Shown here: positions 9,880 to 52,400 of the stretch, one piece after another | Position numbering within the stretch: position 1 is the first letter of the stretch | How the letters are laid out: each line of letters opens with the position of its first letter | Origin: Penicillus capitatus | Lineage: Eukaryota; Plantae; Chlorophyta | Length of the DNA stretch: 64,000 nucleotides | Assembly (NCBI GenBank): GCA_965649825.1 | Contig: OZ287707.1 | Location: 674,292 to 738,291, forward strand | Reading direction: 5' to 3' | Made by a program: the position numbers and the translations under genes | The notes under the pieces: generated by a model | The model's input: the letters and a program-made list of their open reading frames with translations, nothing else | Database searches by the model: none | Told to the model about the DNA's origin: nothing

Positions 9880-10837
9880 TTAATCGTCTGAATCATTCCC
9901 AAAAATATCGCGAGTTTTGTCAACGGATGTTTTGCTAGCGGAACGCGGTTGGCTGTTTGGCTGTTTCTTTCCAGTTCTCAGATGAAATACCATTCCTGTC
10001 GAGGTGGTTTGTTGGATGGCTGTCAAGTTCTTGGCTTCCGCCTTTGGTTTTGACGCCTCTAGTGTCTCTTCTTCTTTCCTCGCCCGCTCGAATCTGCACA
10101 ACAATATTCCACCCACCCATCCTGCAAATGTGATCCTCGTCCCATGCCATACTGTTCGGCAAAGGCATCCAGATCCCGCGTAAGCTGTTTCTGTTCTTTC
10201 CTCAGTCGTTGTTTTTTGGTCCTGCCAGCCACCATCTGATTCATTTCCTTCCATCTCTGAAAAGACAGCGCTTTGATGGTGGACATGACCCACACACAGA
10301 GTCTGTCTGCTTACTTTCTTGTGGTGATGGTCATAAGAGCTCAGATGCATCTCCCATTCCATCGCCGTTTGATACTGTTTGCCACAGGGCTACAGAAACA
10401 CAGAATCGTGGCAGAATTCTTGCGGATCGTGGAATGATGCCTCGCAGTAGAATTTGGCTTTGGCGTCATCATCTCCCTTGGAAGCCTCTCTGCTTCTCTT
10501 CGCACGTGCCTATCACCAGGACTCCATCGCAAAACAGAGAATTCAGGCAGTACGTCGGCTCCTCTCGTTTCGCTTTGGTTGTCGAGAGAGACCACTCTCT
10601 GCGTTGTTTCCTTTTCTTTTGGTTTCATCGACATCTCTCTCATAGAATCTCTACCGGCACTGGTGAGACTGCTACCTGCAAAGAGACGGGCACATAGCCT
10701 GGAAAAAAGAGATGCGTTTCAGTCAAAGCACACGCGCCACAGAACGAAAAAAGCAGCCGATACGGCAACGGAGGTGAACGATGATGGCTCTCGAAGCACG
10801 TACCCTCTTCCTTTTCTTCTGGCCGGTCCATCTCCAT
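9880..10837 (-). CDS. Small C2H2 zinc-finger protein (finger of the type found in G-patch/ZNF804-like proteins)
   Basis: Spliced KFYCE|PCGKQYQTAMEWEMHLSSYDHHHKK|RWKEM. The intron at 10390-10440 is GC-AG and is required to join C..C. Confidence 0.8.
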
Positions 10838-10873
10838 CGGGTTTCGTGAGAATGACGCGACAGAGACATTTCA

Positions 10874-12315
10874 ATGCATATGTATGGGACGACCCCAAGC
10901 GAACGATTCCAACAGTCATCAAACATCGCGATCTCTCTCATGCCCAGTCCATCTAAAAGAGTCAGAATACACAATGCTGAGCTGAACGGTGACGCAGATG
11001 CCATCGAATTAGACATGCTGCAGCGCGGAATGGGCATCGCGTTAAGTGGACGGGGATGGGCCGTCGTGTGTTGGCAGAAGGGAGATGGGAGTGGTGACGA
11101 CGAGGAAGAGCTTTGCAGGATGTTTGCCATTGTTCCGGATGGGCGGGCATTTCTGTCGTACTTGCCAGATTCAGGCCACGCGATTTTGGCATTCGTATAA
11201 GATTTTTGGTGACTTCATGGAAAACACTACCGTCGATGCCATGACAGACGAAACTTCGGAGAATTCTTCTTCTCACGATGTTTCTTCGCTTAGCGACATG
11301 CCAGTCATGATTTACAATGCTGTACGTCCACTGCATTCGCCAAGTCGTCTTCATTTCTCTGAGCGTGTGTCTGCGCTGTCACAGACACCCTTCGTCGAAG
11401 ACAACGTGCAGCGACAACTCATTGCCTTAAATGGCCCGTCCTCGCATGTCTGCCTCGGCATGTCCCTGCACGGCCAGATGCATTGCAGTTCAGGTCGCGT
11501 TGTTGGCGCCAAGCGGAACGCCACGGAAGCTCAAGAATGGTTGTGTGGAGTACATCGATTTTGAGACGGGGCAACGCACGCGGGTAGCAGGAGACCGTTG
11601 CATTGCTCTGCTGTCCTCTCTGGAATCTCTGATCGATCCTGCTCTGACAGACGATGAACCTGTCGACAACGAAGCGGCATTGCGGGCACTTCTTGATGAG
11701 CTGGATACCAAGAAAGAAAGCCGTCACGTACCGGAGGATGGAGCACTGCGCACGTCGACTGTTCTGAATCGCACGCGCCTTACGGCGCCGCCAACACAGC
11801 AACTCGATGCGAAAATGGTGGATAAGATGTCGACGGATCCACAGACGCCGCACAAACGGACGCGAATGGGAGAGAACGTTCGTCCTCGGGCAGCGGCGCC
11901 CAAGACGCAAAGCGAAGAACTCTTCATGCGACACTACCAGAATTTCTGCGTCCTGGATGATGTTCTGCACAGAACCAGTGGGCAGCGTGGTTTCTCAGGA
12001 CATGGTGAAAAGGTGCGCGTGGAGATGAAGTCCTTGGAAGATGGCTACAAGTCCGTGCGTTCTGATACGGCAGTTTCACTCTTATGAGTGTGGCTTGTGG
12101 ATGATAGATGGCGTAAGTACGGCAGAAAGGAAGTCAAGGGCAACACGTATCCGAGAAACTACTTCAAATGCACGTTTCCAAATTGCATGTGCAGAAAACG
12201 CGTCGAACGGAATCCTGAGAATCCTCGAATGCTGATTGCCACCTACGAAGGCAGACATATCCATCCGCCGCCGTTTCTCTCACAGACAGCGACATCTTTA
12301 ACACGTGATCGCTGA
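10874..12315 (+). CDS. WRKY transcription factor (single domain, WRKYGRK variant, C-X4-C-X23-H-X-H finger)
   Basis: LEDGYK|WRKYGRKEVKGNTYPRNYFKCTFPNCMCRKRVERNPENPRMLIATYEGRHIHP. The 5' exons and start codon are uncertain. Confidence 0.9.
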
Positions 12316-12561
12316 TGCATAATCGACATGGATTGGGTACACAGGAGACAGAGCAAAGGGTGTATTGCATGCTGGCGGGGCATTCTTTCATAGGAAAAGC
12401 AAAATGAAAGGACCTTGGGGGTGCGATTCTTTCTGCTGTTTGATTCGGTTCTGAGCGATTGGCAAACATCATCTTTCTGTGATTGGGAACTAGGTTGAAG
12501 CGAGAGAGTGTGTTGTTAATGATCTGTAAAGCTGTTTGTGTACAGAATCGCGTCATCATGA

Positions 12562-15984: not shown

Positions 15985-16033
15985 GGGTCAAAACTCCTGA
16001 TGCAGTCAAACAACGGCACGAATGATGATCTAA

Positions 16034-17644
<1,611 letters not shown>

Positions 17645-17680
17645 CATGCCATGCTGCTTAAGACGAGACGTGTCTTTCGT

Positions 17681-18490
17681 CTATATGATTTTCTTCCTCG
17701 TGAAGAACCGCCTTAAATACCACACTTGCCCAACGGTGATCGCCACACAAACCAACACACAAAGCAAACTCAGCGTCGTCACTCTTGTGTTTGTTGCCTC
17801 TAAAGCAGACAGACAGCGTCTTTCTCTACTGAGTGAACAGGTGAGCAGGTTTTGTTTGTTCGTGCCTGTGATTTCTCGCATCTTGTTCTCGGTGATGCGG
17901 ATCTCTTTGAGTTCATCGTTCAGCGCTTTGATTGTTCGTGTGAACCGTTGCATGTATGCATCGATCTCATCCAGATGCTCCTTCTTGGCAATGACATCCC
18001 AGTCAAACGACGCCGGTCCCATACGCCATTCCAATTTCAGCTTGACACGCGAAGCTATGGCATTGCCTAGATGCCACCCCGTACACTGAGAGCTTCCTCT
18101 CTTTATGCCTTGGCGTACTGGGGACATTAAAGCAGGCTTTGTAGTCGCCCTGATACTGCGCTTTGAATGTCACATTGCCATAATCTGCCGATCCATCATA
18201 CACGGAATTGCCACGAGGATCTTCGATCTGAACAGCCTCGAGAGAGGGCCGAGAATGGCTGAAGGCATCACCATTACTCTGGTCTGAACCGCACGGTTCG
18301 CATCCTGTTTGTCGTATGTCCTGTACTCCAACTCCACTTGCGTATTCCGCAAAATCTCTTCGCTGATGCATTTCGTCATAAAGAGCATATTGAACTCGAC
18401 AGCCTCGACGCCATGAGCAAGCACGGTTAGAAGGACACAGACGAAAAGGCACAAGGCCTCGCGACGAATCTTCTCGCGAGACACACGCAT
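17681..18490 (-). CDS. p24/emp24/gp25L (TMED, delta-like) cargo receptor
   Basis: Signal peptide, TKCISEEI, GOLD domain (GDYKACF), coiled coil REIT|EATNTRV, TM helix and YLRRFFTRKKII dilysine tail. Confidence 0.93.
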
Positions 18491-18548: not shown

Positions 18549-20142
18549 ATGAACCCAACGAGTGAAGCGTTGGAGCGTTTTCGGAGCATCACCGGCGCTA
18601 ACGAAGAAACTGCCCGTCGATGTTTGACGGCAAGGAACGGCAGCGTCGAGGCCGCTGTCGAGATGTACTATACGTCAGGTAGATGCTCAGCAACAAAGAG
18701 ATGCGTCATGCGGTGCGTGCTCAGCAGAGGAGTTCCGAGAACAGCGACCTGAAGAGCCAGCCCCGCCGCGAAATCCGCAACCACCTGATGTACAGGCTGG
18801 GGGCGGTGTCATTCGTGCCGTATCGACTCTCGTTGCCACCGTCGTTTCATCTCCATTTCGAGCACTGCGGGCAGGTTGAGTGCAGGGCCGGCCATATGAT
18901 AATGGATGGTGGTATCATTAAGTGTGTTTGTTCGTTCAGCTGCGGCCTATTCTCTGAGGGATCCTGATGAGAGGCTCCTCGCTCATGACTTTATTCGAGC
19001 CTTTGAGTATCATTACGGTGAATGGCATCCGGATTTTGTCGAGTTGGGATGGAAGGAGGCAACGCAACAGGCGGAACGCCAATCCAAATTCCTCTTTGTC
19101 TATATCCATTCTCCAGAACACGAAGTCCCTTCACCGCTGCCCCGATGACATCTCCATTCTTTCCTGTCTGCAGGATACAGATGCCTTTTGTCGTCAGGTC
19201 TTATCATCTGCTCCCGTTGTGACATTCCTGAATCAAAATTTCGTGTGCTGGGGTGGATCCATTCACCGTACACCTGCCTTCTTGGTATGTGATAACACAA
19301 GGGAGCCTGTTAGAGATATGTTGTGCTTGGTGAGGACAGTTGGCGAACAACACCGGAGCAACCACCTACCCTTTCATGTGTTTGCTGGGGCACATCGGAG
19401 CACAGGTTACCGTGATTTCATCGGTACAAGGCAAAGTGGCAGGGCCGCAGTTAATAAACGTCCTGCAGCAGTCTTTGGATGAACAAGGGGCGGTCTTGAC
19501 TGCCCAAAGAGCAGAAAGACGTCAACAGGCATGCCGTCCATACGCTGAATCCATGGTCGATGTTTCGTTCGTGGTTTTCAGGAAATGGACCGTCAGCTGA
19601 GACAGGATCAAGATCTAGAGTTCCAACGTGCATTGGAGGCCGATCGAGAACGGGATCGAAAAAATCGTGAGGCGGCTGCAGCACAGGCAGCGCGAGAAGA
19701 GGCCGCTCGGGTACGTGCCGAAGAGGAACGACTGGCACAGGAAGCAGAGGAGCAACGAAAGAAAGATCAACAGGAGGCCATTGTCAGGCGCCGCAGAGAA
19801 AAGCTGTCGGCTCTCAAAGCAGAGCCTGAACAGACGGGCAACATCACTCAGATTCGCGTCCGACTTCCAGATGGAAGCACACACAATAGGAAATTCCTTG
19901 AAACAGATAAGGCACGATGCATCCCTCTCACATACATGAATGCGTCTTGTCACGTCCTTGACATCTAGGTTCAAGATGTGTATGACTTTGTGGATGCCTT
20001 AGAGAGTTTGCATTGTTGGGACTATACATTAGCCAGTTCCTATCCTAAAATCGAGTTCGCTTCTGACACCAGAGATAAGAGTCTGCTGGAAATGGGAGTG
20101 GAGCACAGTGCCACACTACTTGTCCAGTCTCACGATGACTGA
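18549..20142 (+). CDS. UBA-like plus UAS plus UBX domain protein (PUX10/FAF2-like)
   Basis: ALERFRSITG...AAVEMYY; FIRAFEYHYGEWHPDF...KFLFVYIHSPEH; LRQDQDLEFQRALEADRE; IRVRLPDG...RKFLETDK|VQDVYDFVD...LASSYPK. Two GC-AG introns. Confidence 0.93.
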
Positions 20143-23725: not shown

Positions 23726-24456
23726 ATGATCATCTACAAAGACATCCTAAGCGGTACGCATACGCGACTCTTCATCCAATCTCCATCCCAGACGCGCCGC
23801 GCTGTCTAGGCGATGAGCTCTTTTCCGATTCCTACGCTATGAATGAAGTGGAGGATGGATTCTTCTATGAAGTCGAAGGGAAAGTGAGAGATACTTGATA
23901 TGGGGAATAGGGGAAAGCACGATGGTATGCTGCATGGTAGTGGGTTGTCGTCGGTGAGCAGGAAGTTGACATCGGAGCGAATCCTTCGGCAGAAGGAGGA
24001 GACGAAGAAGGAGTGGATGACTCGTCAAGGAGAGTGGTGGATCTAGTGGACGCTTCACGTTTGCAAGTGAGAGGTCTTGGTTGAAGATGGAAGCTAACCG
24101 GAAGCTGTCTATTCTATCAGGAGCAGCCGGCTTATACCAAGAAGGACTTCATGGCTTACGTAAAGCCATGGCTCGGAAAGGTCCTCGAAAAACTCCCGGA
24201 TGAGAAAAAAGACGAGTTTAAGGCAAAATCACAACCGGCGGTTAAGTTTCTCCTAGGAAAGATCAAAGACTTGCAATTGTGAGTGCCGTGATGTCCTGTC
24301 TCGATACTGGATGCATGAATGCGTGTATGTTTGTGCAGCTTCACGGGCGAGTCGATGGACGTCGAAGGAACATTGGTCTATGCTTATTACAAAGAGGGAG
24401 CCGCCAATCCAACGTTCCTCTTTCCAGTCTACGCCCTGGAAGAGATGAAGTGCTAA
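23726..24456 (+). CDS. TCTP: Translationally controlled tumour protein
   Basis: MIIYKDILS|GDELFSDSY...YEVEGK|WVV...[10 protein letters not shown]...[11 protein letters not shown]|[17 protein letters not shown]...IKDLQF|[10 protein letters not shown]...ALEEMKC; four introns. Confidence 0.97.
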
Positions 24457-24539: not shown

Positions 24540-26020
24540 TTATTTCAGAAAGACTAGCAGACGCTCAGGCCGTTCAAGGAACTGCTTCCATCGATTGGAG
24601 AATTCTACGAGGTTGGCGCCATCCAGGACACGATGATCGGCTCCCCAACTGATGGGCATCATAGGACATGCCTTGAGGTCTGTAAGATGACCGGAAACGT
24701 CCTTGCTGTCCTTCACTCGCACAACAGGCCGCATTCTGCCGATAGCGACGATAGCTGTCTGAGGTGGGACAATAAGAGGCGTGGCGTAGATGCCGCCCAT
24801 CGAACCGATGTTGGATATCGTAATGGTAGCACCTTGCAGATCTTCAGGCTTCAGGCAATCTGACGCGGCAGTCGATTTGAGGCTGTACAGCTCATGTGCG
24901 ATATCGACGATTGTCTTTTGTTGAACGTTCTTCATCACGGGCACGACCAGACCAGTATCCATAGCCATAGCGATGCCGATGTGATGGGCGCGATGGACTA
25001 TAATCTCCGAATGATCTTCACTCAAACTGCAGTTGATTTCAGGAAACTCCAACAGAACTGCAGACAGGGCCTTGACGAGAATAGGAAGCAGTGTAAACGA
25101 CAATCCACGCAGACGCGGTTCATCGGCAATGTTGCTCTTCATCGTCAACAGCGACGTCACATCCACATCGTCTGTAAAATGAAAGTGTGGAATCGTCATC
25201 GACGCTGTCATGTTCTTCAGCATGCTTCGTCTAATGCCTTTGATCGGAATCCTCTTCTCTTCCCCGATGTGCTCTGCAAGACACAACTTGAACGTTGCTT
25301 TTCTTAAGTGGGCGATGCACTTGGTGTCGACGGTTCGCGATCCATGGCAATGTACTTAAGAACATCTTCCTTTGTCACTCTACCTCCTGGGCCCGTTGAT
25401 GGGACATCTGCCAGATCGATGTGTTTCTCTTTGGCCAGGGAGCGAACAGGCGGCGCCGCCAGTACCGGTTTCTTTGGTTCTCTATCCTGCCTTGCCTTCT
25501 CTTCGCCTGGGGTGTCCGATTTTTGTAAGGCGGCTTCTGATGGCGGACTCGTGATTTCTGCTGAAGTGTCTTGATCGACATCGATTTCCATCAAGGTACT
25601 TCCAACTTTGATAATATCTCCAACTTTGTGTGGTAATGAGGTGACCGTTCCTTCGTACGGGCTAGAAATCTCGATCGAAGCTTTATCGCTCTGAACTTCG
25701 CATACCTTGTCAAATCGTTGAATTCTGTCGCCTTTCTGCCATCATGAAGGCCTTTTGACGGAAGCATAAGCTCAGCTGGTTGTTACCTTGACGAGCCATT
25801 TAATCAGTTCACATTCGGCGATGCCTTCTCCGGTTTGAGCCAGAGGGAATTGTACGACAGGAAAGCGGAGAACAGAAGAGGTCGAATACCAAGACCTGAT
25901 GCTTCTAGATGGACCGCGAAGCGTCCCCGACGAAGACGGCTGTCTCAGATCTGTCCAATAGACAGCGCTCGAACGCAAAGAGAGCGCACGCAGCACACGC
26001 CGGAGACAACACCTTTGCAT
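24540..26020 (-). CDS. DBT: Branched-chain 2-oxoacid dehydrogenase E2 (dihydrolipoamide acyltransferase)
   Basis: Lipoyl domain FPLAQTGEGIAECELIKWLVK|...EVQSDKASIEI, E3-binding VLAAPPVRSLAK, catalytic TITISNIG and WGADHRVLDG. Confidence 0.93.
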
Positions 26021-26550: not shown

Positions 26551-29188
26551 ATGACGCAGAAGAATGATCGACAGGGACACATTCGCATCTTTCTTCGCGC
26601 TCGTCCTTCGCGCCGAGCGTCACGAAATGCGCAGATCGACCGCGAAGAAAACCGCATTGCATTCACTGTACCCAAAGACAAGGCGACTGGGTATGCCATA
26701 CCAACTGGCTTCGACCATAACCTGCCTCTTATTGTGGCTCTCCATAGCTATGTCAACAACAGCACTGAATATCACGCCTTCTGTTTTGATGGCGTCTTCG
26801 ATACCGATGCCACACAAGAGCGTGTAAATCATCTCAGACCATTACCCTCTGCCTGCGATACATACAGGACTTGACAGGTGTTTGATGACGTGGCACTCGA
26901 TGTGATCCAGGGTTCTCTGGAGGGCTACAATGGCACACTGTTTGCCTATGGGCAAACGGGATCCGGAAAGACGTTCACCATCACTGGAGGTCCAGAGCGC
27001 TACGCTGATCGCGGGATCATTCCGCGAACCATCGCAGCCGTTTTCTCAGAAGTGTCACAGAGATCCGATCAGACATTCACGGTGATCCTGTATCCAAGAG
27101 AACGCCACAGAGGAACCCGATATCTCTCCAGATTCACATATCGTACCTAGAGATCTACAATGACGTCGTCTATGACCTTCTGGATCCTGATCGGGAAATC
27201 AAAGATATCGACGATCTGCCGAAAGTCGTGGTCCGTGAAGGCGAAGACGGTCATCTTGTGTTCAGCAATTTGAGAATCTGCAAAGTCGAGAACGAAGAAG
27301 ATGCGCTCAGTCTCGTAAAGAGATGATCCTTGGGTGCCTTGACAGATAATGGTGTGGTTTAGCTGTTCTTGGGCGACACTAATCGGACGATTAGCGAGAC
27401 TCCGATGAACATGGCATCCAGTCGATCGCATTGTATCTTCTCCATCCATATCCAGTCAAGAACAGTAAACGCACGATCCTTCTCGTGTATGTGACAGACA
27501 TGACGTGTGTAGAATGGTCAAGACTTTGTGCGAACTTCGAAGCTCAATTTGGTCGATTTGGCAGGATCGGAGAGAATTAAGAAAACGGGTATCGATGGAA
27601 CAACGTTGACAGAATCAAAATACATCAATCTCTCACTGCATTACCTGGAACAAGTCATCGTGGCCCTTCAAGCACGCGGACATTGAAAACTGGAGAAGGG
27701 TCGATTTCGGATGGGTGTTTTTTAGGAGAATGCAATGGGTAGAGATCGTTGGTACATTCCCTATCGGAATTCTGCCATGACGATGATGTTGCGGGATTCC
27801 TTGGGTGGTAACTGCCGTACGGTTATGATCGCTAACATAAGCATTGAGCAGAAACAGTTAGATGAATCCATCTCCACCTGCAGATTTGCTCAACGCGTGG
27901 CAATGATCACCAATGAGGTACAGAGCATCCAGATGCAGGATGACGACACTCGGTGTCCCAGGCGGTGATCAACGAAGAAGTGGACCCGGCTTTCGTGATC
28001 GCCCGTCTCAAACGCGAAATCTCCGATTTGAAACAAGAGATCAGAATTCTGAAAGGACATGAGGATGCCGTGTGTGAAGAGGATGTTGAAGATTTGAGAG
28101 ATGGTTTCAGAAAAGAGCTCGTCGACTATACTCTCTCCAAGATCGACGACCTCGACCTAAACAAGAGCATCTCCCTTTTGAGATACGGTCAGAAATCGGA
28201 TGCTGATGGCAGTCCGTCGCTTGGAGTGACGACGGCATCTCCTTAGGCTTCGAAGTCATGAAGGAACTTGTCCACGATGCAAAAAGCTCCAAGCAGTCAG
28301 GGACAGCACAGATAAGACGCGAAAGTAATGTTGAGAGGAAGGCAGAAGAGAGCAAGCTGAGAAGGGTCAATGACTGTGACGATCTCCCTGTGACAAAAAC
28401 AACAGTGTCGAAGCATGCACAACAGGTGCAGATGATGTGACTTGTCAACGATGTCGTCTTTGTGCGATGAAGATGGAGGAAAGTGGACAGAATATCGAAA
28501 TCACACAACGGGAGGCTCTGCTGCACAATCAAGAAGAACTGAAGCAGAAAATTGCGATGGCGAAGATGGAAGGCCAGAAACTCGCGGAGTCGAAACAGAG
28601 GCTGACCCAACTGAAAGCCTTCATTGAAAAGAGGAGACTCAAACGATCCGTTCTGCAGCTCTGTGCACCATCTGAGGCATACGTACCAGAAGGCTCAGCA
28701 GAACAGCCGCCACTCGATCACGAGGAAGAGAAGGCACTGCAATCTTTAGCAGAGGTCTGTTCGGCCGTCACATCCAGATTCTGCCTGCTCTCATCGTCTC
28801 ATGGTGACCTGGTTTAGGAGAAGGCAAAGTACAGGAGGTCTTTTCATACGCTGCGCGATTTGAAGAAAGAAATCGAAAATCTGCAAAGGTTGCTTGCACA
28901 CAATAGACAACAGATAAAGGTCGTCTGCTGTGATCGAGATCTATCTGCTTCCATCCTTTGACACATCAGGCCAATTTGGAGAATCGCGATTTGAAGGACA
29001 GCGGCACAAAAATCCAGAGCAGCCTTTCAAATGCTGCTTACTTGGAGCAGCAGCGCGACAAACAAGCGATCGATCCAGAAGTGTTCAAGCGCGCCCAACA
29101 GCACCTCACCGGAAACCCTTCGGCTGATCGAGAGATTCTGCACTTCTATCAAACAAAGCATGAGATTGAAAAACAGCAAAGAGGATGA
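26551..29188 (+). CDS. Kinesin-9 family motor (KIF6/KIF9-like)
   Basis: [74 protein letters not shown]|...[37 protein letters not shown], coiled-coil tail; about 11 introns, one GC-AG. Confidence 0.92.
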
Positions 29189-29585: not shown

Positions 29586-30639
29586 TTATTCTCTATCTTT
29601 CTCTTCGATCCATTGGCTCATGAATCTTGTTTTTGCCCAGTACAGACAGGCAAACCAACGAAAAGCGCATAGATGACCAACAAAGGTGAGGCAGTAGGCA
29701 AGCGGCGACCATACGTAAGCTGTACTAAGAACCTGCATCCAATAAATCGATGCTACTGATAGAAGAGATGTCATCACTCACTGGATAGATCCACAGTCCA
29801 GTGTGGACATGATGCATGAAGAGCCATATGATGTAGACACAACACCAGACACCGACAGATCCTCTCAAATGATCGAAGAACGGAATCCTGTTCATCATCA
29901 ATTCCACAACCATCATCAAAAGATTCAATGCATGCTACATCCATTCCTCCTCACACAAGATTCCCTCCCTTTCAGAAGTCACACTTCGATGTAGCTGAAC
30001 ACATTGAAGAAGAAAGTGGCGTGGAGATCAGGATAGGGGCGAGAGAGTGGATAGAGAATGGCCCAGGTGCCAATGTCCACAACCCAGACCGTCTGCCATG
30101 TCATGTGTGAGAATCACACTTTGGAGAAGAGACGATGTTTTGTGTACTGTCATGTTTAGATGAAACAAAATAATGGCGAGGTAAGATCCTGGTCCAAAGG
30201 GATGCTCTCTTTCTTTTGATTTGCGACGGCGAAACCAGTATGTCTCCCAAACCGTCACGCCAAAATACAGCGTCAGACACCAGAAGTTCCTAAATTCCAC
30301 CACCCTGTACAACGCATCTCGTTCATGACTGCCTCACCATTTGGTGTAGAAACGCAAAGGACGAATGCCCTTGATTCGCAAATGCACAAGGGAGACAATA
30401 AAGGCAAATAGAAATGCCACAAGACGGTAGGCAAAGAGCAGATTGGGATGGACGGCATAACTCAGCACCACATCATCGACAGTTGAGCTGAACCACACAT
30501 CCACCGATCTAGACACGCACGCTTGCGTTATCGTCTATCCTCATCTTGGACACTATGCGCGTTGCCTTGTCCGAAAACACTTCGCACTGCGGAAGAGACT
30601 AACGAGGCCGACGGCTAGAGACACTGCGGTGTTGGACAT
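29586..30639 (-). CDS. Multi-pass membrane protein, 'rolling stone'-like family
   Basis: Spliced hydrophobic segments LFAYRLVAFLF...RFYTKW|NFWCLTLYFG...HALNLLMMVVELMMNRIPF...GLWIYP|VLST; start inferred through a GC-AG intron. Confidence 0.65.
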
Positions 30640-31262: not shown

Positions 31263-33934
<2,672 letters not shown>

Positions 33935-34310: not shown

Positions 34311-37300
34311 TTATGCTTCAACGGAATCTGTTGTTTCATCAAGGTCGATCAATGGCTTCTCAACTGCCAGGAACTGTTGAATAAATGCCATTCGCCGAGT
34401 TTCAACGACGCCCTTTGGAGAATGCATGGACGGCGATCCCTTAAAATAGTGCTCTACAGAAGAAGCCCTAGATGTGCATCGGCAGGGATGGTGGATGTTC
34501 TTACTGCTCAGAGATCCTCTGTTGATGTCCTGAAAGAAAATCTGACAGAGAACTCTGCCCACCTCCTCCTCCGTCAGTTGGTTTTTCTTTCTGTTGGTCT
34601 CTACCAGAGCGGAACGCATGAGTTCCATCGTCGAATCGAAAACAGCCCATTCGATTGCGGACATCGCTTCCTTCACCAGATTCATCGCCATCTCAGCAGA
34701 GACGTCTGAGATTTCGCAGTTCTGTGCTACGGATTCCGGAATCATGGGTGACGGAAGGTCCAGGAAGAAGCACAGCAGTGCCGTTGCCATGTCATGGGCT
34801 GTGATGCCTGTTGGGAGACTCTGGGCTTCGTCCAATGCCACGCGGATTTCGAAGACGGCTGGTATCGTCGCCCTGCTATCTCCAGCCTTGCAGATCTGTT
34901 TCATGCTGTCGACAAACAGATTGGCCGTCCGCAAACGACCATCCGTTGCCAGAAAGTATAACATTCTTGAAATCTGGGATGGGATCATTAAACCGGTGGG
35001 GCCCTCCAGTAAATTTGGCTGAGGACCTGAAAACAGATATCCATTCCAATTGAAAAGAGTGCTCGAGTGAGATCCATTCCTGACCTGTGGTTGCAATGGA
35101 ACTGGAATGCTGTAATTCATTTCGCTGGGGATCATGGGGGGAGGCAACGAGATGGTCGTCCAAATCCAACGACGACATATCTTCCTTCGCCGGTAGTTCC
35201 CAGCCACTGGCATAGGGCTGGCTCTCACGGTATTGCATGCTTGGAAGAACCGTCGCCTTCGTGATCTTTCCACGATGGAGTTTGTTCTGATTCCGTGGCA
35301 ATTGCAGTGCAAGATGGTTAAGAGAGATGCCGAAGCACGACAATGTGTAATTTCCCATAATACTTATGAAGAAATCGGATCCGCCTTCGACATGTAGAAC
35401 GAGAATGTGATCCAATTTGCATTCTGGATTGCCTACATCCACACTGTCTGTATAGAGTGCCGAAAGAGGCATGCCTTACCAAACAGTTCATCGGCACTGC
35501 CCCATTGACCGCCTTCGATACAGACAGTGAGCTTGATGTTCTCTTTCTTTCCGGCTTTGACGATGCCAGATGTTGGCTTGGCTGAGAGCCAGCTTGGGAA
35601 TGGACTGCGTATACGATGACGACTAGGATTGGGAGGAATGAAGGAATACACAGCTGTTGTCTCTCCTGTATTCTGGATTGTGACGGTGAATTCCTTAGGA
35701 ACTCCATAGGGCACCATGCCAGCTTCGATAACCGTTGGAGATAGCTTGCAGCGAGGAATGCTTGCCATTTCTTCAACATCGACACTCCTCCTTGCCTCTT
35801 GCAGTGCTGCATCGACTTTCTGGATATTGAACTTCCGCGCCTCCATCAGGAATGTTCCGATCACTGGTTTGTGATCCGAAACCGAGATGGGGGCAAAGCT
35901 CCCGTACAGCAGCTGATGTAACTGCTTTCTGGAAGAATACCAGAGAATTCGATCAGTCCAAGCAGGCGTACGAATCTTCTTCGGTTTCTTCTTCGGCTTC
36001 TCTTCTTTCTTCGCTGCGGCAGTAACATTTCCTTCAGATTTTGCTCTCTTGGGGAGTTCTGTGTTTCTGGGAAAGAAAACACAACGCAGATCACTGTCAA
36101 TAGGGTATGGAAGTGTTCGATCGTACACAAAGAGAGATTCTTTTCTTGAGGGATCGATCTTCGACTGGGGCATGGAGCCTCTTGTCGGGAAGGGAGTGTG
36201 TGACTCGGACGTGTCGTGCTTAACGGGATGCGATGGCACATCTTTCCGCAGAGCTGCAAAGGCGCTGTCATCCAGATCGATATCTCCTTCCGATTCCGAA
36301 GAGGAATCCTCGTCAATCTCTCCTGTGTAGTAGCCGGTCCCTCGAATGAATTTGTAGGTCGGCGGAAAGTCGATTGGCGCTTCATTAAAATCCTTCAAGA
36401 GGCATCACTCAAAAGCCATCCAGTGAAAACTGACAGACGCACTTGGAAAACTTTGCCGGCGGCCCGTTCGACGGAGAGTTGATCGTATTCGAGTAACTGT
36501 GGTAACCTGAACATCCACGTGTCGTCTCTGCAAGTGAAGGACACGATGTTACCTATCCGTACGGATGAGTTGGATGACATCCTTGATCTTTCCAGTGATC
36601 CGATAGTTCAGATCACCGACCCAGATGATGTTATCCAAGTCACGCATGCTTCGGAGGGATCCCCATTTCCCACCCACAAATGCACGTTTGATATCATAGG
36701 TTGCATTGTCTGGTATGCCTTCGGGTCGGACCGAGAAATCCTCAACCGATGTTCCATCGTCTCGGGTGACGCGTGTAAGTTCGACTTCGTGGGGAAACTG
36801 TGTTCTTCGAATGATCTCTGAGAAATCGAGGTTTCTTTTGATCTGGTCTCCATCATTCGATCCCGAAGCCAGATGCGACGTCACAAAGACGAAGACAGAA
36901 TCGTCGATCCGGAAACGCACAGCGATGGCCCCTACACATGCATCTTTGAGAATGATGCTGGGCTGACACATGACGACTCCATCTTGCCTTTGTTTGCTAA
37001 GTATCCGAGTGCGCCTGTCGCCACCGTTGTCACTTGGACACCACTAATGCGTTTCACCAGACTCTTGCGGACCCATCCTGTCACGAACAGTCCAACGAGC
37101 TGATATCTGAAAAGCTGCAAGAATTCTTCATGCTCTTCGCTGCCCTTTGGTTTTTGCTTTTCACTCTTCTTCGGAAGTTTGATCGTCGTCGGTTCCTCAG
37201 CGGCCATCTCTTTCTTGGGGTCTACGGAATGGCTCTTCACTAACGGCGAGTCCGTCATCGAATCAAATGAGATCAGGTCTGCCATGTCAGCTGTATTGGA

Positions 37301-38234
37301 CTGCGAATATCTCCTTTTCGACTCCTTCAGATGATCATTGAACTTCTTCTCGTCCAAGCTTGACCCATGACGCTTCAGCGCTTCCATCCTTGTCGTCTAA
37401 AGCAAAAGAGATTAACCACAGACGATGGCAGTGTGGAACGTGGCAGCACATCGGTCAGAGAGTTCTTGACTCGGGACTCGAGATTTGCAGATGGCACCCC
37501 GGACCACCCTGATACATAATAGTCGATGATGGACTTCTCGTGATCCCCTCTTCCAAATGGCGAAAGACCAATCTCCTCTTCCCTGTCAAAGAGAGACGTG
37601 CATCAACATTGCCATCGATTCCGACAGCGCATACGTTTTCCAAGGATTCAAGCATCGATCGATGGCCATATCCCAACCAACAGGCGCAGCAGTCCATCCT
37701 GGATACACAACGATGTCGTAGGATAGTTTGGATAGGAGTGTTGGATGCCTGCAATGATGTTTTGTGCAGTTAATGGAACGGCCTCTTGAAATCCCATCAC
37801 ATAGATATCCGCCCGATCCGGACTGCCCTTCCCGGAAGCCTTCTCCCGTGCCGGCCACCTTGACTGCCATTGAGCAATGTAGTCTTTAAAATCCAAATCG
37901 TCTGGCGGTTTCCTCCCGTTCAGATTATACGTCGAGGCCTGTCACGTCACATCTTTCACACTTTTCCAGATCATGCATTTCGCACCCAGATGCGTATTTC
38001 ATTCATTTCCGTATAATGTTCTTCCGGTATTTTATAGAACTCCGTTCTCACTCGTTCACTTCGGGTGTTCTGAAGCAGCTCCTCCAACGTTGCATACTCC
38101 ACACTGGAACGCACTGACACAGACATAGGTGTTATCTTGGCCGACATGACGCCGGTTCCCTTACTCTTCACTTCTTCATTCTCATTCCAGCTTCCAGCAT
38201 CCCTTGTCTGTCCACTCGTCTGTGTATTACCCAT
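34311..38234 (-). CDS. Type II inositol polyphosphate 5-phosphatase with ASH and RhoGAP-like domains (OCRL/INPP5B-like)
   Basis: YVMGFQE, NKG|AIAVRF, FVTSHLASG, IIWVGDLNYRI, FPPTYKF, TPAWTDRILW, SDHKPV, ASH-like Ig region ending LHVEGGSDFFISI, then a RhoGAP-like C-terminus. Two GC-AG introns. Confidence 0.93.
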
Positions 38235-39812: not shown

Positions 39813-40712
39813 TTACGTTGTCAGCGGAAACGAGTCTTTGTCGATGGAGCTTTGAAATCTGTTAAAAATGGATGCAAGATTATCGACGGCTCTAGACAGG
39901 TCCTGATATCGAGTGATGGTATCGAAGACGTCGATGCGACACGAGAACTCGCCGTAGAAAGGATTCGCACCGGCTAATGCCACTTTGATCGATTGAAAAC
40001 GCAGATCGAGATCGCACGATAGTTCGACATGAGGAACCATGATAGATTTCCATCTAAAACGGTGCGCGACATAAGAATGACGTTTGGGGAGAAAGGTCTT
40101 GGGAGGCAATTCAAAATACTCAGCCACGTCGGGAAATACGTCCAAGACGTCTTCGAAAGTATCGAACTCAACGACCTTATCCAGCTCATCCCCTTTCATT
40201 TTGAAAGTAAATCGGTGGTAATCCGAGTGAATGTCGCAGTCCAGGTGAGTGTCGACGTCTTCGTCATCGTCCGTCGGAAAGTTGAATGTCTCTGGATCGA
40301 TGTCCCGAATCTTGAGCGCCGGTTTGATTTCCACCTTCTTCTTCAGTTTACCGTCTTTGATTTTCTGCTCCTGACGTACTCGGGCGTAGCAGGATGCGCG
40401 ATAGGGTATGGTCGCGACATTGTCTTCAGGCAGAGGCGCACCATCGTCCTGTGTCAAGAGCCAGGAGTTCTCTGTGAAAATCTTCTCATCGAAAGACTTT
40501 TGAGGCGAAATCTTGTGGCCAGAGATAGAGACAAAAGAACTCCACAGTGACGTCGCTCGCTCGACGAGCATTGAGCGGTCAGTGACATCGGCGAAGGCAT
40601 CCATGTTCAGAATCACTTGAAATTCATAGTTTTTGAGCCACTGTTGTGCCGGACACGCTGAAAAAGGCACATTCGCTGCAGTCGATTTGCTCCCGGCCAC
40701 CTGAATTTCCAT
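39813..40712 (-). CDS. Intronless 299-aa hypothetical protein, possibly CYTH/triphosphate-tunnel-like
   Basis: Uninterrupted ORF with globular-protein composition. Beta-rich motifs YEFQVIL, LKIRD, LSCDLDL, GEFSCR loosely recall bacterial CYTH-like proteins. Confidence 0.6.
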   Translation of the reverse strand: MEIQVAGSKSTAANVPFSACPAQQWLKNYEFQVILNMDAFADVTDRSMLVERATSLWSSFVSISGHKISPQKSFDEKIFTENSWLLTQDDGAPLPEDNVATIPYRASCYARVRQEQKIKDGKLKKKVEIKPALKIRDIDPETFNFPTDDDEDVDTHLDCDIHSDYHRFTFKMKGDELDKVVEFDTFEDVLDVFPDVAEYFELPPKTFLPKRHSYVAHRFRWKSIMVPHVELSCDLDLRFQSIKVALAGANPFYGEFSCRIDVFDTITRYQDLSRAVDNLASIFNRFQSSIDKDSFPLTT

Positions 40713-41117: not shown

Positions 41118-42583
41118 TTACTCTTCATGTGCATGGTCGTCAGGTAACTTGTCTTTGTAAATCCAGCACTGCAGTGATCGGCATGAAGGGGATCCCATAT
41201 GGGCAGAATGCATGTACCTCGTATTCGATGTTCTGCACACGACTGTGGATGCGTTCCTTTCGTTTGACGAGTTCCTGTGGGCCCAAGTCTTCAGGGACCA
41301 AATGCATGAACTCTTTGTCGTTCTTGACGGCGAAGCTTTCCTAAAACGACATTGAAAAAATGATGCAAGACAGCGAAGTACAAACCAGATCCTCTCTGTC
41401 ATAGAGATACCCATGCTCTGCCCATTTCGACCCATCTGGCAACTCATAGAAGGCAAAGAGATTGGACCAAGAGAGCAATGGACTGCCGTCTTTGCCCTCG
41501 CCGATATTGAAACAGGCACAGTGCTCTGGGTCTACGGCAGACATGACGGCCGTGTGTTATGAATGTTTTGCAGGTTCTCTCGGAAGGCACCTTGAAGACT
41601 GAACTTGAAAACGCGGTTTTGATCGTCGGCGTCTACGACGTGGACCACTTCATAGAATATCATCTTGGCGAGGTCGATTCCTGGATGTGCTGCAGCCACG
41701 GTTGAACCGCGAGGTGGTTCAGGGATTTCTTTCTGGAATGTCACTCGAGCATCGCCGCCAGAACGATTTACCGTTCTTCGATTAACGACGGCCTCTTCCT
41801 TTGCCATCGGGCCTAGTTTCCAATACACGTGTCACCCATCCTTGTTACTGGTGGAAACATACGCGATGTGAGAGAAGGCGGTTTGGAGGAAGAAAGCTTT
41901 GCTCTAGGCGACGCCAGTGCCGACGATTCTGTTTGGACAGTTTTCTTGCCAAGAATCTCAGCCAAAGGAGCCGGCAGAACGGCCTGTCGCTGCAAAGGCA
42001 ATCGAGCAGAGGGCGTTGCCGCACGCGTTGCATCATATCGCATCCTTGGCCGTGCCCTCGGCTACATTCCATCGCACTCCTCCCTCGCTCAAAGAACATC
42101 CGCAGCTGTACTTACATCTGCCATAATTTTCATGAGCTGTCGGGCTGTGCGTCCCTGCAATTCATTGGCAATTCTCTGCCAACTCCATCCCAACTGACAG
42201 GCCTCCTCGACCAAGAGATACTCCTCTTCAGAGATCACCAAATCACGTGTCATATCATTGAGCACTTCCGAAATCTCTCCGCTATTTGGAATGACCCGAG
42301 CCGGTGGTACATAGCTGACACTTCGAACGATCTCTGCCATCACCGTCAGCATCATCATACAGTTGTGGACGGTCATTGAGCTCTAGGACATGCCTTGTGG
42401 TGGAGACAGTCCCACAAAGAATCTCGGTGCCTTTCCCAGTCGATGTCCCTTCTCGCTGACAGCATCGCCATATGCTTCCTTTCCTTCGTGCTGCGTCTTG
42501 GCAAGTTTATTGAGGCCCGTCGAGTAAATGGGCGGATCCGTCAGTGGATCTCGAAGCCGCGGATAAGACCGTTTGCGTACCAT
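41118..42583 (-). CDS. Myb/SANT plus BAH-like domain chromatin protein
   Basis: ISEEEYLLVEEACQLGWSWQRIANELQGRTARQL (Myb/SANT helix pattern) and LFAFYELPDGSKWAEHGYLYDREDL|ESF...E (BAH-like); multi-exon, first intron GC-AG. Confidence 0.6.
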
Positions 42584-45941: not shown

Positions 45942-48938
45942 ATGTTGAACACCGAGCAATATGCAACTGTTATTGGCAGTGCGGCCGTCGGTGCGCTAGT
46001 GGGTTGGTTGTTCGGAAGGTCGACAGCGTTTTCGATTTCTCACGCTCGACGCCGTATCTAGGGCGACGCGTTTTCGGGAGGCTCGTCGACTATTGGGAGA
46101 TAATCAATGGTGGATGTCGGAACAGGCAGCGCTTCGCTTCTCGATACCTTCCTTAGGCATGACTAGGGTTTCGACAGGAGATGTATGTGGCCAGCGGATT
46201 GATTGCGGCTGGACATGGACATCTATTATCGTACTGGTCACCAGCAGGCACAAACGACGCCCTAAAGAGAGAGTTCATGATGATGGTGCTATTGTCCATC
46301 AAACATGCAGCACGGGATCTTGAAAAATTCCGAATCGCTTTGATTCAGCCGCCCGTGTCACAGAAGAACCCTTACTATATGCAAGCACACGACGATGTTC
46401 GTGATGACCCTTATTACTGGTGCCAAACAGACTCATCGATCTGAAGCTGGATGGGTCGGGACTGTATGGGTATAGGATGCGCGATGATTCGAGGCGACAT
46501 CCAATTGTGCAAGCTCACATAAGAGCTGAGAATCGATATACAATGTCGGTCATGGCGGATACGGTGCAGTTGCAAGAACTGATGTACAATGAGATGCGAG
46601 CACATACCAAAGAACAGGACACCAGTGCGCCGCTGCGGTATTGCCTCGATCATCTGATGTCCCATGATCGCCATTTAGAGTGCAGAACTACTTCTACTAC
46701 ACAAGAGTGTCACAGAACCAAAAACGCGCCGTCCACTGCCGAAGAAGGGTCGGATGGGTATCCAGACCTGCCGAATACGAAAGATGTGTGGCTGTCTTCT
46801 TAGGTCCGGCATCCCGATGAGCCTCAGAGTGTGACTGAGGTGATGGATGATGGAGTCCCTGAAGAGATTCTGTTGGATGAGAACGAAGAAGGACGGCGAT
46901 ACGTTTCCTATGATGTGTGTGGGTTGAAGATCTCGCCTAACGAACAGCTCCTCGCCTACTTTCAGGATACAAAGGGCAACGGATTCTACTCGCTCAAGAT
47001 CAAACACATTTACTGTGGCAAGCAGTTCCTGAAGAACCAGATCCGCACAGCAGGGAATCAATGTGAATGGGGTAGCAACTCCGCCACGCTTTTCTATTTG
47101 ACGTTGGACGCCGTGGGAAGACCCAATAAAGTCTGGAAGCATGTATTGAATACTTCTCCGGACGAGGACACATGTCTCTATACAGAGGCAGATCCTGCAT
47201 TTTATGTCTCACTCTATAAGACAAGAGACAAGTCGACCATCTGCATCCAATCAAGCACGCATCCGATCGTCGTGCCTGTCTTTGCAGCATTCAGATGTCT
47301 TTGTAGTTTCCAAGACAATGACGGAGTGCAGGATTTTGAATGCAGACTGTCCAGATGAACTGACAGTCGTCCTTCCGAGAAAGCAGGATGTGCATTACTG
47401 GATCGAACATCACAACAATAGCTTTTTTCTCCGCATCCAAGATCCGCAGAGACTGAATTCTGAAATAGCGATTGCACCTGTGGCGGATCCTGAAGATCAG
47501 ACAGTTGGTTTCGCCAGTTCGTGGCCAGGTGACACTAAAGAGCATAATATCTAGGTGCTGATCCCTCATCATCATGATCGGAAGATCGAAGAGTTTGTTA
47601 TGAGTCGTCGTTATTTGACGATCTTCTGTCGCAAAAACGGTCTGCAGACAGCATTTGTCTACATTGTGCCACATGATATAGAAAACGTACGGCAACTGAG
47701 AAACTCCATTGAACTGAAATTTGAGGAGGCCGTGTTTAGCTTAAGGCCAGGTAGAGACATTCGTATGCTCAGTCCTCAGACAGAAAAGTGGTTTAGTAGG
47801 TCCTCAAGGGGATTTTGAGTCTGAGATTTTGCGTTTGACATATGCGTCGCTGATCACACCAGAGTCGATCATCGACCAGCATCTGGGAACATTCGAGAGA
47901 TGCGTCAAGAAGATGGAGGACGCACCACTTGTCGATTACGATGAAACAGATTACAGGAGCGAACGAACGTGGGCCCTTGCTGCCGACGGTGTCCGCGTTC
48001 CCATCTCAGTCGTCTACAGAATTGACGCCGTGCAGCACAACGGAACAGATCCTCTGTTAATGGAAGTCTATGGTGCCTATGAGCACTGTCTCAATCCCTC
48101 GTTCTCCAGCAGGAGAATCTCTCTGATGAGAAGAGGCGTTGTCTATGCCATTGCTCATGTGAGAGGCGGTGGCGAATTGGGAAGGTAATCGTCAGCAGAG
48201 ACACTACGCGATCACCCTGTTCTCGTCAGAGCTTGGTACGAAAACGGAAGACTGATGAATAAGAAGACAACGTTCTCCGATACAATTGCATGCGCCAAGC
48301 ATCTGATCGACAAGATGTATTGCAGCGGATCTAAATTGTGCATCACCGGAACGGGTGCTGGAGGATTGGCTGCTGCTGCCGCTGTAAACATGCAGCCTGA
48401 GCTTTTCTGCGCCGCCATTCTGCACGAGCCTTTTGTGGACATACTGACATCCATCAGCGATGGGAACATGTCTCTAAGAGCAGAAGACTGGGGCGAATGG
48501 GGCAATCCTCAAAACGAAGAGCACTACAAGTGAGGACGGCATCCTGCCTTAAGTACTTCCCAGTCTCGGCGTCTTGCGATAGATACATGAAAAGCTACTC
48601 CCCTGTGGACAATGTGGAGCACCAAGACTATCCACACCTGCTGATGACTGCCGGATACCATGACGCGAAACTCGGCTATTGGGAGCCTGCAAAGTATGCA
48701 GGTTTGTGTCGTTGTCGATACTTGGCTTCGGTCTCAGTTGCCGTGTGTAGCGAAAGTGCGCGATTACAGCACCAATTCAAGTATCGTAATCTTCAAGTGC
48801 GACATGGACGTGGGGAATTCCTCAAGCCGTTCGCGGCTCTTGCATTATAGAGATGCCGCTTTGAACTATGCATTCTTGCTGAAGGCTATCGGACAGCCTC
48901 CGTCCAGAAACGGAGAGACCGAAAGCAGTAACCTCTGA
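45942..48938 (+). CDS. Oligopeptidase B / protease II (S9A) with N-terminal hydrophobic extension
   Basis: [11 protein letters not shown]|[73 protein letters not shown] (nucleophile site reads GTGAG, see findings), [38 protein letters not shown]. Confidence 0.9.
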
Positions 48939-49447
48939 ATTGTGCAGAAGAGCGACGGAAACGAACACAAGATGAATCGAACCTCTCTTCGTTACTTCCA
49001 AAGAAAGCTCGCCGAACGAGAGCATTTCTGTCGAGACGACAAGGATATCTTCGAGCGCGCTTATACTATTTCCAATACTTCTGAACTCGCGAAAGGCGTC
49101 ATGCAAAAAGAATCCATGAACGTCGGCCCCTCGCAACATTCTGAACGAGATGCGGCCTTAGGCATCACCATCATCGCCGGAATACGTTACCCATTGAACT
49201 GTTCCTAGATGTGTCAAGCGTGCGACCTAGCCAGTCGTTAGATCCAGACCTTTTCGCCTTAGGTCCAAAACCCGATGATGGAAATCTACGCGACGTGGTG
49301 ACGCTGAACGAACGCGTTCGCTGTTTGCCTGCAATTCTCTGTCGCGCGTCGAATGGCGAAAGCTTTCTCGTGAACCTGGAGTGATGCTCGAATCCTCTCT
49401 GCACTTTCTCTGAGACGCTGGTGTGTTTCAGTGACGTTCAGCGAACA

Positions 49448-52400
49448 ATGCTCCGTAAGAGATTGATTGGAAAGACGGCAAAAGAGTGCAGCATTGCGAA
49501 GAAGTGCTCGCAAAAGGTAAACGAAAACGCCGACGCATAACATACGCCCTTTCTATGAGCAGGTCAAGGGGGAATACAAAGCAAAGGACGGCCATCCCGT
49601 GTTCCCTCGCATTGCCGACACGCGTTCTGCAAAGGGCCGTGCGCAAAAGCTCTCTGACGATTTCTTCTTGACGGATCCGGAAGTGATATATCGAATCAAC
49701 AATACGCTCCGTGCCGTTGAGAGACTTCGAGAGTCTTACCACGATCGGCCGAACAAAGTAACAACCGATGCGAGTATTCGACGACTGGATCACAAGAAGG
49801 CATGTGCGAAACAGACTGCGACGGATGAGGCTGTCGCGACAGTCTCCGATACCAACGAAGAGGTCCGGCAGCTAACCTGCAGGACACGCCAGTACCGAAC
49901 TCTCTTCTCTCAGGCAGATAACATTGACACAGACGCAGTGGCGATCGATGGGGAGAGTGAAGATCATTTGAGACTTGACGTCTGTCTGAAAGGAGATGAT
50001 GATCAGCCGCGTTCGTCTTTGTCCATGGATGATCATCCTTTGGAACATGGTGGCAAGAGAAAGAGATGGCAGTCGCAGCATTGCAGCCATTCCGCGAATG
50101 CCGTCAGCCCTCGTGAACATGACTTGTTTACGATGGATGACTTACGACTTCATACGGACAAGATTTTTCACAGCGTCGAGCAATTGAAGATCTCGGGAGC
50201 CGGTCTCCAAACTCAATGTGACTTTTCGCCACATTGCGTGCGTGATAGGTCTATATGAAGCGCGTTGTGGCAGTCTTATGCTCATTCCATCGACACGTGT
50301 CATCAAAGGGCTAAAAGAAGAACGATGTCTACTGGATCATACACGGATCGCCAGAGAAGGCGCTGAAGCACTCGGTCAAGCATTGCTGATCAACAACATC
50401 ATCGAAAACCTGAGTCTCGTCGATTGTGCCCTCGATGCAAAGGCAGAGATCGCCGTCATACGCTCGCTATGATTCGAAACAGTGTTTAGCAGGCTATTGA
50501 GAGTATCGTCGACGGCCTGAGAAGTGGAGCAGCGAACAATTCTCGTTATTGTAGGCAACTCACGACCTCCGTCGCGCAATCAGCCATCGGAGGACATCAG
50601 ATTCGCAACCTCGATCGTGGTGCAAGCATGTCAACGGAGAGAAAGAAACTTGGTCTCTCCCTTGCGCTGTCCAATCTAATTGGAGGATAGACTAGTCACC
50701 ACCTGACTGTGTAGGAAGTGTGGCGACGCGAGATCTGTTGGCTGAAGATATTCAAAGACTCAAACAGGCGGCCCGAGATTCACATGTGCCAACGAAATCG
50801 AAGGTTACTGGACTGAATCTGTCAGAGAATTCCCTCGGCGTTCCTGGAGGACGATGTATTGCAACGCTGCTCGATCCTAACTTCACGGCGTACTTTCTAC
50901 TGAACCTCGCCACCGTTGTTCTTTCTGATCACCGCCGTCTGCAGTTATCCATCGTTGAAGTCCCTGATCTTGGCGAAGACGAGCTTAACAGACGATGGTG
51001 TCCTCGCCATTGTGCGAGCACTGATGAATGGCAACTCTTCCTTGACGGAACTAAATCTGTCGGCGAATAACATTTCCAACAAGAGTGCATCAACCATTGG
51101 TGAACTCCTTGATTCCAATCATGCTCTCAAGAACCTAAACCTTTCCTGGAACACGATTAAGGTAGGAATACATCAGTGTTGGATGCCAAGGGTATGTGCG
51201 TCTGTGGTTAAACAGTCAGCTGGAGCCGCGAGTTTGGCTAAGGGATTGATGGCGAATGAATGCCTTGAACATTTCGATCTATCCTGGAACGGTTTGGAGA
51301 ACGAAGGTGCCGTTCAACTAGGCGAAATGCTGTCGATTAATCTGAGCCTGAAATCTCTCAATCTGATGCACACAAGAACAGGAACAGAAGGCAGCCTTGT
51401 CATTGCAGATGGCTTGAGAGTACAGCCATCCACGATCGAAAGCAACTTCCCCAGCTCAGCATTTAGGTCAACGGCTCTCTGGAGAAAATCTCGCTCGATG
51501 GCAATCCCATCGGCGAATTTGGAGCTAGGCATCTGATGCTAGCCATCAGTCATAACAAGACATTGAAGTTCCTTGGACTCCAAGTCAGATACCGTTTTTG
51601 AGGATCTGTGCTTGGAGCACTTGATGGCTCTCAGGGATCCAATATGAGTTCGACCGTGGCAGATGGCGAAGCAGAATCCGCCAAGTTCAATCCTTCATGT
51701 CCAGATGGCAGTTATCACTTGGATCTCAGCAACCAGACCGACCGAACCGTCGCTGTTCAGCTGTGCCAACTCAATACCTCAGTTTCTCCTAGTCAGATGC
51801 GTAACGTCACATTGGACGGCAAAGAGATCCAATCCCAAAACATGGACTGGCCAGACAGGCAAGCGTGATACCCGTAGCTCTTTTCTATGATACATGGATC
51901 TACAGATTACCAACACAAGGAATACTGAAGCTCGACTATGTTTCGTCGTCGACGCGCAGAACGTTATCGGTAATAGATAACAAGAAAATCACGGCGCTTA
52001 TTGGGCAGTTCTCGCATCCATCGATGTCCGATGGAGAGAGACTGAATATTGTGAACATCTCAGCGCCTCACCACTTCTTTCTCTGCCATCAGATCTGTCA
52101 GATACTGCAAAAGTTTCCATTGAGCGATGAACGACTCGAAGCTGCTTGTGCCTTTTTCACACGGGCTGTCGATACCGATGAACATTTGGATGTCATGTTG
52201 AGTCCACTGCACGACAGAGAAAGAAACATGTTTTTCGGAAAAGTCGCCCACTACGCCGCATATGTCTTCTCTAATCCCACAGGCAAGAAACGTCGCTCCT
52301 CTGCCGCAAGGAATCGGTGAGTGAGAAGTGTATGTAGGACATTACGAACTGAACTTGACGATCCCGTTCCATCGGCTTATTGCCAACCGACTCAAGGACT

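Follow-up and report, generated by a model that had tools for sequence, protein, structure and literature searches.

Frequent GC-AG introns with a strong donor context in a gene-dense stretch of the Penicillus capitatus genome

The stretch analyzed here, called the window, is 64,000 nucleotides (nt) of Penicillus capitatus DNA (contig OZ287707.1, positions 674,292 to 738,291 of the forward strand), and its introns begin with GC instead of GT far more often than is usual. The GC content of the window is flat (48-51% throughout) and gene density is high, with about 24 genes modelled in 51 kb and interrupted by very short introns. Over positions 3369-54367, a gene model that accepts both GT and GC donors returns 117 GT and 23 GC introns, and curation of the GC calls leaves 118 GT and 16 GC introns, or 12% GC. 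This share falls to 9% when 13 GC introns are counted and rises to 16% when all 23 model calls are, and about 1.3 GC introns would be expected among 134 at the usual rate of 1%. At least one confirmed GC donor is present in 11 of the roughly 24 modelled genes. An earlier note, made from the letters of this DNA, had described 13 GC donors per 80-100 introns, which is close to the curated value. The 16 GC-AG introns are the following (window coordinates, strand, gene, and donor, with a slash at the exon-intron junction):

9637-9688 (+), SWAP/Surp-CID gene, cag/GCATAC; absent from the earlier list
10390-10440 (-), zf-C2H2_jaz protein, FYCE/PCGK, gag/GCATCA
16851-16900 (+), NDUFAF7, cag/GCAAGT
17800-17865 (-), p24/TMED, cag/GCACGA
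19529-19581 (+), FAF-type UBX protein (likely intron), cag/GCATGC
19912-19968 (+), UBX domain (FAF1-type), aag/GCACGA
27672-27725 (+), KIF9 kinesin, caa/GCACGC
30509-30565 (-), membrane protein, aag/GCAACG
32696-32745 (+), DHX35, ISK/ASAVQRAGR, aaa/GCGAGT
36932-36987 (-), OCRL-like 5-phosphatase, NKG/A, aag/GCAAGA
37699-37748 (-), 5-phosphatase, NIIAG/W, cag/GCATCC
42334-42393 (-), Myb/SANT-like gene, aag/GCATGT; replaces 42383-42430
47255-47306 (+), oligopeptidase B, caa/GCACGC
50443-50492 (+), LRR protein, aag/GCAGAG; absent from the earlier list
51859-51905 (+), same LRR gene as 50443, cag/GCAAGC; absent from the earlier list
52283-52337 (+), same LRR gene as 50443, NPTG/HY, cag/GCAAGA

Relatives for comparison were reached through protein look-ups. 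The sister species B (sample ERZ26696514; loci L006, L001 and L005) aligns end to end with positions 3369-54367 at 86-87% nucleotide identity. It is represented by two contigs (520 kb and 2.24 Mb; L001 versus L005/L006) whose shared stretches are 99.5-99.7% identical, and which may represent separate haplotypes or strains, or the same sequence assembled twice. Where they overlap, both contigs agree on the state of donor position +2. Species C (Logan SRR33785045 and SRR33785046; L003 and L007) is a more distant relative whose loci encode DHX35, the 5-phosphatase, the Myb-like gene and the membrane protein. A further relative, L004, has a DHX35 gene with fewer introns.

All 13 intervals of the earlier note and all 16 curated ones start with GC and end with AG. 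Twelve of the 13 are supported at exactly the coordinates first proposed, with 19529 as a likely case, while 42383-42430 turns out to be exon: in frame, the only three bases that differ from B are synonymous third-position substitutions, and the true GC-AG intron is 42334-42393. Once the introns are removed, the junctions align without gaps to solved homologues, to Pfam models or to L004 in nine cases. In the zinc-finger protein (10390), read-through meets an in-frame stop, no GT-AG alternative is available, the Pfam match runs unbroken over the junction, and B also has GC. The NDUFAF7 junction INDAQ/VRWH (16851) aligns gap-free to 5ztz; the interval, at 50 nt, is frame-shifting, and B likewise has GC. 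For the p24 intron (17800), MREIT/EATNTRV is gap-free against both TMED10 and TMED2, and B, which keeps GC, has indels of +1 and -4 inside the interval. At 19912, read-through leads to a stop, there is no GT alternative, FLETDK/VQDVYDFV aligns gap-free to the FAF1 UBX domain, and B has GC. In the kinesin (27672), the universal VIxAL helix motif is intact with the GC junction but partly deleted by the GT alternatives; GC is kept in B, which differs by 7 nt of internal indels. Removal of the DHX35 intron (32696) restores helicase motif VI, and because L004 is intron-less here and reads straight through, the junction is fixed to the base. The donor is GC in species C (GCAAAA); in B, an insertion of 2 nt gives GTGCGAG and hence a GT donor. 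Of the two 5-phosphatase introns, 36932 is gap-free against 1i9y and 7a17, with GC in both B contigs and in species C (GCAAAA), and 37699 is gap-free against 1i9y, shifts the frame, has no GT alternative, and is GC in B and GT in C. In oligopeptidase B (47255), ICIQS/ISKT is gap-free against 4bp8, and the B donor at this very base is GT.

The other introns are traced mainly through comparison with B. Directly past the 9637 donor conservation falls, and there are 3- and 4-nt indels; GC is found in B too. The 19529 interval shifts the frame and contains 6- and 7-nt indels in B, where GC is kept, but one GT alternative (+27/+24) survives the frame test, and this intron is therefore likely, not certain. 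At 42334-42393, frame-breaking indels of 4, 1, 3 and 2 nt separate the window from B, which has GC, while C has GT. Each of the three LRR introns shifts the frame: 50443 shows a 4-nt indel between conserved flanks, with GC in B; 51859 has 4- and 7-nt indels, GC being kept, and its sole GT alternative is missing in B; 52283 has 1- and 4-nt indels and GC in B, where its sole GT alternative, 9 bases downstream, reads AT. At 30509, both B (GTCACG) and species C (GTGAAA) have GT, so the C in the window is derived. For 30509 and 52283, the support consists of the sister species and the reading frame.

Two stretches stand out for their similarity to B. The 19912-19968 intron is 93% identical, versus about 75% in other introns, and the 51-nt stretch 9767-9817 (+) carries a single base difference. 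Either could be a regulatory or structural element, or could be retained in some transcripts.

Reading frames contribute less than might be thought. Read-through is broken in 12 of the 13 intervals first proposed, as had been said of most of them, and the exception is 17800-17865, which is in frame and without a stop. The further claim, that GT donors of the right phase are lacking, applies to three loci; the other ten have a frame-preserving GT-AG alternative, and only homology or comparison with B excludes it. A chance frame-preserving GC..AG pair can also be found at most loci. Frame tracing alone thus proves nothing. A case in point is the model call of a GC-AG intron at 27104-27150 (+), which is false, as the GT-AG intron 27082-27131 (+) restores the kinesin motif ISYLEIYN. 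That intron is easily mis-called, since the (I)SYLEIYN motif alone decides, so that frame-based intron calls are fragile here. Seven other GC calls (7776, 8241, 9767, 10676, 13144, 40961 and 46129) were left uncounted because they are unsupported or have GT alternatives.

A competition between all 16 possible donor dinucleotides is more informative. The dynamic-programming gene model scored codon usage, synonymous and non-synonymous differences from B, frame-breaking indels, intron length, acceptor context and donor context, the latter over -3..-1 and +3..+6, trained solely on GT introns and with the 16 dinucleotides treated as equal. Across four penalty settings it places 59-71 introns with GT and 14-17 with GC, versus 1-10 (mean about 3.5) for every other dinucleotide. 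Twelve of the 13 introns of the earlier note are returned with identical coordinates, and the GC result is unchanged when B is left out. GC sites with GT-like flanks therefore occur at frame-compatible places far more often than those of any other dinucleotide. GA ranks second of the controls (8-10 introns), but most GA-AG calls are shifted versions of nearby GT introns, and once of a GC intron. With a loose intron penalty and B scoring, the controls receive 28-75 introns versus 50 for GC, a count that is uninformative, and models built from codon usage alone either fragment the genes or run through everything.

The context of the donors separates the two classes of introns, which are otherwise alike:

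A at position -2: 55% of GT donors, 16/16 GC donors (P = 1.7e-4)
G at position -1: 47% of GT donors, 13/16 GC donors (P = 0.01)
A at position +3: 41% of GT donors, 15/16 (94%) GC donors (P = 4e-5)
G at position +5: 50% of GT donors, 11/16 GC donors (not significant, P = 0.13)
Consensus matches out of 6: 2.96 for GT donors, 4.06 for GC donors (P = 2e-4)
Median intron length: 51 nt for GT introns, 52.5 nt for GC introns
Intron GC content: 49% for GT introns, 49% for GC introns

Outside the dinucleotide, GT donors carry 1.1 bits over -3..-1 and +3..+6, versus 5.9 bits for GC donors. The GT donors are thus as variable as had been stated. The GC donors had been called degenerate as well, and the full GCAAGT is indeed mostly missing, but their context is not degenerate: they are clearly compensated by an AG/GCA(N)G context, with some selection bias possible, while positions +4 and +6 are unconstrained. 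Such a context argues that base pairing of U1, U5 and U6 with the two sides of the exon-intron junction remains important, with no need for a changed U1 or U6.

Intron lengths are tightly set (median 51 nt, 5-95% range 46-63). No branch-point motif is visible, YTRAY occurring in 22 of the 134 introns and in 14 of 134 exon controls. The last 35 nt are rich in G and T (GTGTG, TGTTT) and not in pyrimidines, with GTGTG found there in 24 introns versus one exon control. Acceptor position -3 is C or T, and the modelled acceptors are AG in both species save one (139/140 in B). In an all-against-all blastn-short comparison of the 134 introns, the only shared sequence is a 13-nt chance pair.

Comparison between species shows that GT and GC replace each other at the same donor. 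At the 16 GC sites, B always has G at +1 and a 3' AG; +2 is C in 13 and T in three, the latter arising through substitution at 30509 and 47255 and through the insertion at 32696. Species C has GC at two of the five orthologous introns compared (DHX35 and 36932) and GT at three (37699, 42334 and 30509). Change in the other direction is also seen. Three GT donors of the window are aligned to GC in B; one, at 40371, is uncertain, and the two solid cases are:

23754-23809 (+), GT-AG intron 1 of TCTP, GC-AG in B; window gcg/GTACGC, B gcg/GCACGC
8468-8517 (+), GT-AG intron, GC-AG in B; window act/GTGTGA, B act/GCGCGA; internal indels

With rates of 3/16 from GC to GT and of 3/118 in the opposite direction, GC donors would settle at about 12%, the share found here. 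Position +2 retains its C at 13/16 sites (81%), no better than neutral intron sites (75-80%), and its T far more often (97%). The pattern is consistent with purifying selection that preserves +2 T in most donors and with nearly neutral exchange of T and C in donors of strong context. As GC is found in independent assemblies of three species, assembly error, and with it the T-to-C consensus error that the earlier note had named as a possible refutation, is excluded.

We propose, with good confidence, that these are U2-type introns whose 5' splice site is loosely read, in which GC donors are compensated by their context and GT and GC interchange over time. The weak GT donors, the lack of a branch motif and the tight length fit a loose reading of the 5' splice site aided by intron length. 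The relaxed recognition first suggested for this DNA thus stands as far as the GT donors and the fixed length are concerned, but the compensation of the GC donors makes the altered U1 or U6 put forward with it unnecessary. Recognition of introns as short as these (about 50 nt) probably takes place across the intron, and their length and G/T-rich 3' tract would supplement a very weak 5' signal, so that GT donors may require almost nothing beyond GT itself. A change from T to C at +2 would be tolerated when the neighboring positions (the exon-end AG, +3 A and often +5 G) pair well with the small nuclear RNAs. This extra pairing would involve first U1, then U5 and U6, as in other eukaryotes. GT and GC would then be exchanged by point mutation at a low and roughly balanced rate, leaving about 12% of donors as GC at any time.

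Several points weigh against this proposal. The two clear B-specific GC donors (act/GCGCGA and gcg/GCACGC) lack A at -2. In the 16-way competition, removal of the donor context lowers GT to 36-49 introns and makes GC inseparable from background. The selection of GC sites itself used a donor-context score, so GC donors in a poor context may be missed and the compensation inflated. The set of 118 GT introns comes from our own gene models and is partly curated; one model GC call was false and about seven others were left uncounted. The sample is 51 kb, so the genome-wide GC share would be an extrapolation, and we infer every splice junction from sequence.

An altered spliceosome (through the U1 5' end, U1C/LUC7/PRP8 or the U6 ACAGA box) that reads C and T at +2 alike would account for GT donors that are nearly signal-free, for the missing branch-point motif, for a GC share about ten times the usual in a genome that is not GC-rich, and for the GC donors of B that lie outside an AG/GCA context. 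We nevertheless judge it unlikely. If C were equivalent to T, the much stronger context needed by the GC donors of the window would be unexpected, and the change from GT to GC is rare (3/118) though about 25% of intron sites differ. In algae with high GC-AG shares, putative U1 genes have been retrieved in search of peculiarities, and the available text of that study gives nothing on them but G+C contents and describes the origin as an "enigma" (PMC3033335).

It is less probable still that the GC donors are maintained as weak sites whose retention or alternative splicing regulates the host genes. The high identity of the 19912-19968 intron, the stop-free frame of 17800-17865 and the two GC donors common to the distant species C would be in keeping with this, but +2 C is conserved no better than neutral sites, the host genes are unrelated housekeeping genes, and three of the five orthologous introns in species C are GT. 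Finally, an artefact, either T-to-C consensus errors or chance GC..AG pairs beside true GT donors, is largely refuted for the set as a whole and has a negligible probability: chance pairs are common, loose models give the controls as many introns as GC, and one proposed intron was misplaced (42383) and one model call false (27104), but the same GC recurs in assemblies made from other samples, conserved motifs fix exact junctions, the differences from B at +2 are T, that is a canonical donor at the same base, and the A at -2 and +3 is far from chance.

The observation is thus confirmed as real and well above chance, and amounts to a known oddity in a new lineage. GT-AG introns make up 98.3% of the total in animals, 98.7% in fungi and 97.9% in plants (PMC7072748). 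High GC-AG shares are found in Aureococcus anophagefferens (39.6%), Micromonas pusilla CCMP1545 (22.2%) and Chlorella sp. (7.7%), according to one study (PMC3033335), and in Emiliania huxleyi (about 56-60%; PMC4028052). As in these algae, the share in the window is far above about 1%, the acceptor is a canonical AG, and the introns are presumed to be U2-type. The high-GC-AG algal genomes are, however, about 65-70% GC, and the authors blame this GC content (PMC3033335), whereas the window is 50% GC and its introns 49% GC, the share is lower (about 12%), and the introns have a near-fixed length of about 50 nt. In the Micromonas introner elements IE-A1, 53% of donors are GC, in an AG/GYGCGT context (PMC3879977). 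They resemble the present case in that GT and GC are interchangeable at a green-alga donor, for which a permissive spliceosome was proposed (PMC3879977). Introners are repeated mobile copies, while the window introns are mutually unrelated, not copies of each other, and lie at positions common to the species; they are not introner elements. The BOC1 introns of Mamiellophyceae are likewise numerous and shorter than 75 nt, without a visible branch point and with weak splice signals (PMC3879977). Unlike the window introns, which match the exons in GC content and, with one exception among the modelled acceptors, end with AG, BOC1 introns are AT-rich compared with exons and mostly GT-AG, with some TG or CG acceptors (PMC3879977). 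At 49% GC the window introns are not AT-rich (<43%), no low-GC outlier region exists in the window, and its closest named relative is an ulvophyte, not a mamiellophyte, so the BOC1 class was set aside. The GC-AG introns that make up about 1% in plants and animals share with those described here the swap of GC and GT at orthologous positions and flanks that are stronger for GC than for GT (PMC7072748, PMC6310983), but here the share is about ten times larger and compensation is confined to -2, -1, +3 and +5, with +4 and +6 free. U12-type introns, for which we looked for the donor RTATCCTT and the branch site TCCTTAAC 10-26 nt from the 3' end, do not account for the set, as only 37699 is partly donor-like and the other donors are GCAC, GCAA or GCAT without TCC. 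The 37699-37748 (-) donor, GCATCC, resembles RTATCC at positions 3-6, but the branch-like stretch has no conserved counterpart in B.

The window also holds a number of identified genes, including:

7818-9849, SWAP/Surp-CID splicing-related protein
11217-12315 (+), WRKY transcription factor
23726-24456 (+), TCTP
24540-26020 (-), 2-oxoacid dehydrogenase E2

The Pfam match of TCTP spans residues 1-157. Pyroglutamyl peptidase, a glyoxalase-fold protein and Nse4 are encoded as well. Two adjacent intron-less genes, 1407-2684 (+) and 4292-6637 (+), specify DOMON-repeat proteins, the second also with a cytochrome b561 domain, and DNA stretches of the two are 74-86% identical. Open frames of 260-350 codons (17034-18086 (+), 16859-17641 (+) and others) run across real genes in a different frame or on the opposite strand, for example opposite p24, so the length of an open reading frame alone is a poor guide to genes in this genome. 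There are no tRNA genes in the 64,000-nt window, and an Rfam search of the window and of five related loci (L001 and L003-L006) gave no match to small nuclear RNAs or to any other RNA gene. The TBCC-domain protein has its top named match in Caulerpa lentillifera (53%), with trebouxiophytes next (31-39%). The best match of KIF9 is the 7n61 kinesin-like chain, a green-alga affinity for which the WRKY gene is cited too. On the few genes behind this placement, the host would be a chlorophyte, possibly close to ulvophytes.

Abundant GC-AG introns are thus found here without a GC-rich genome or introner repeats, and three related species are at hand for comparison. For the annotation of this and related algal genomes, the matter is a practical one, as gene finders restricted to GT would mis-model about one intron in eight. 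We raise more tentatively the possibility of a chlorophyte clade of at least three species in which the 5' splice site would carry hardly any information and GC-AG introns would make up at least 10% genome-wide at 50% GC. If true, this would break the explanation of GC-AG abundance by GC-rich DNA and would point to a changed recognition, either a measuring of intron length or a variant U1/U1C. With their tiny, fixed-length introns, these algae are a useful natural experiment for asking how much decay of the 5' splice site is tolerated.

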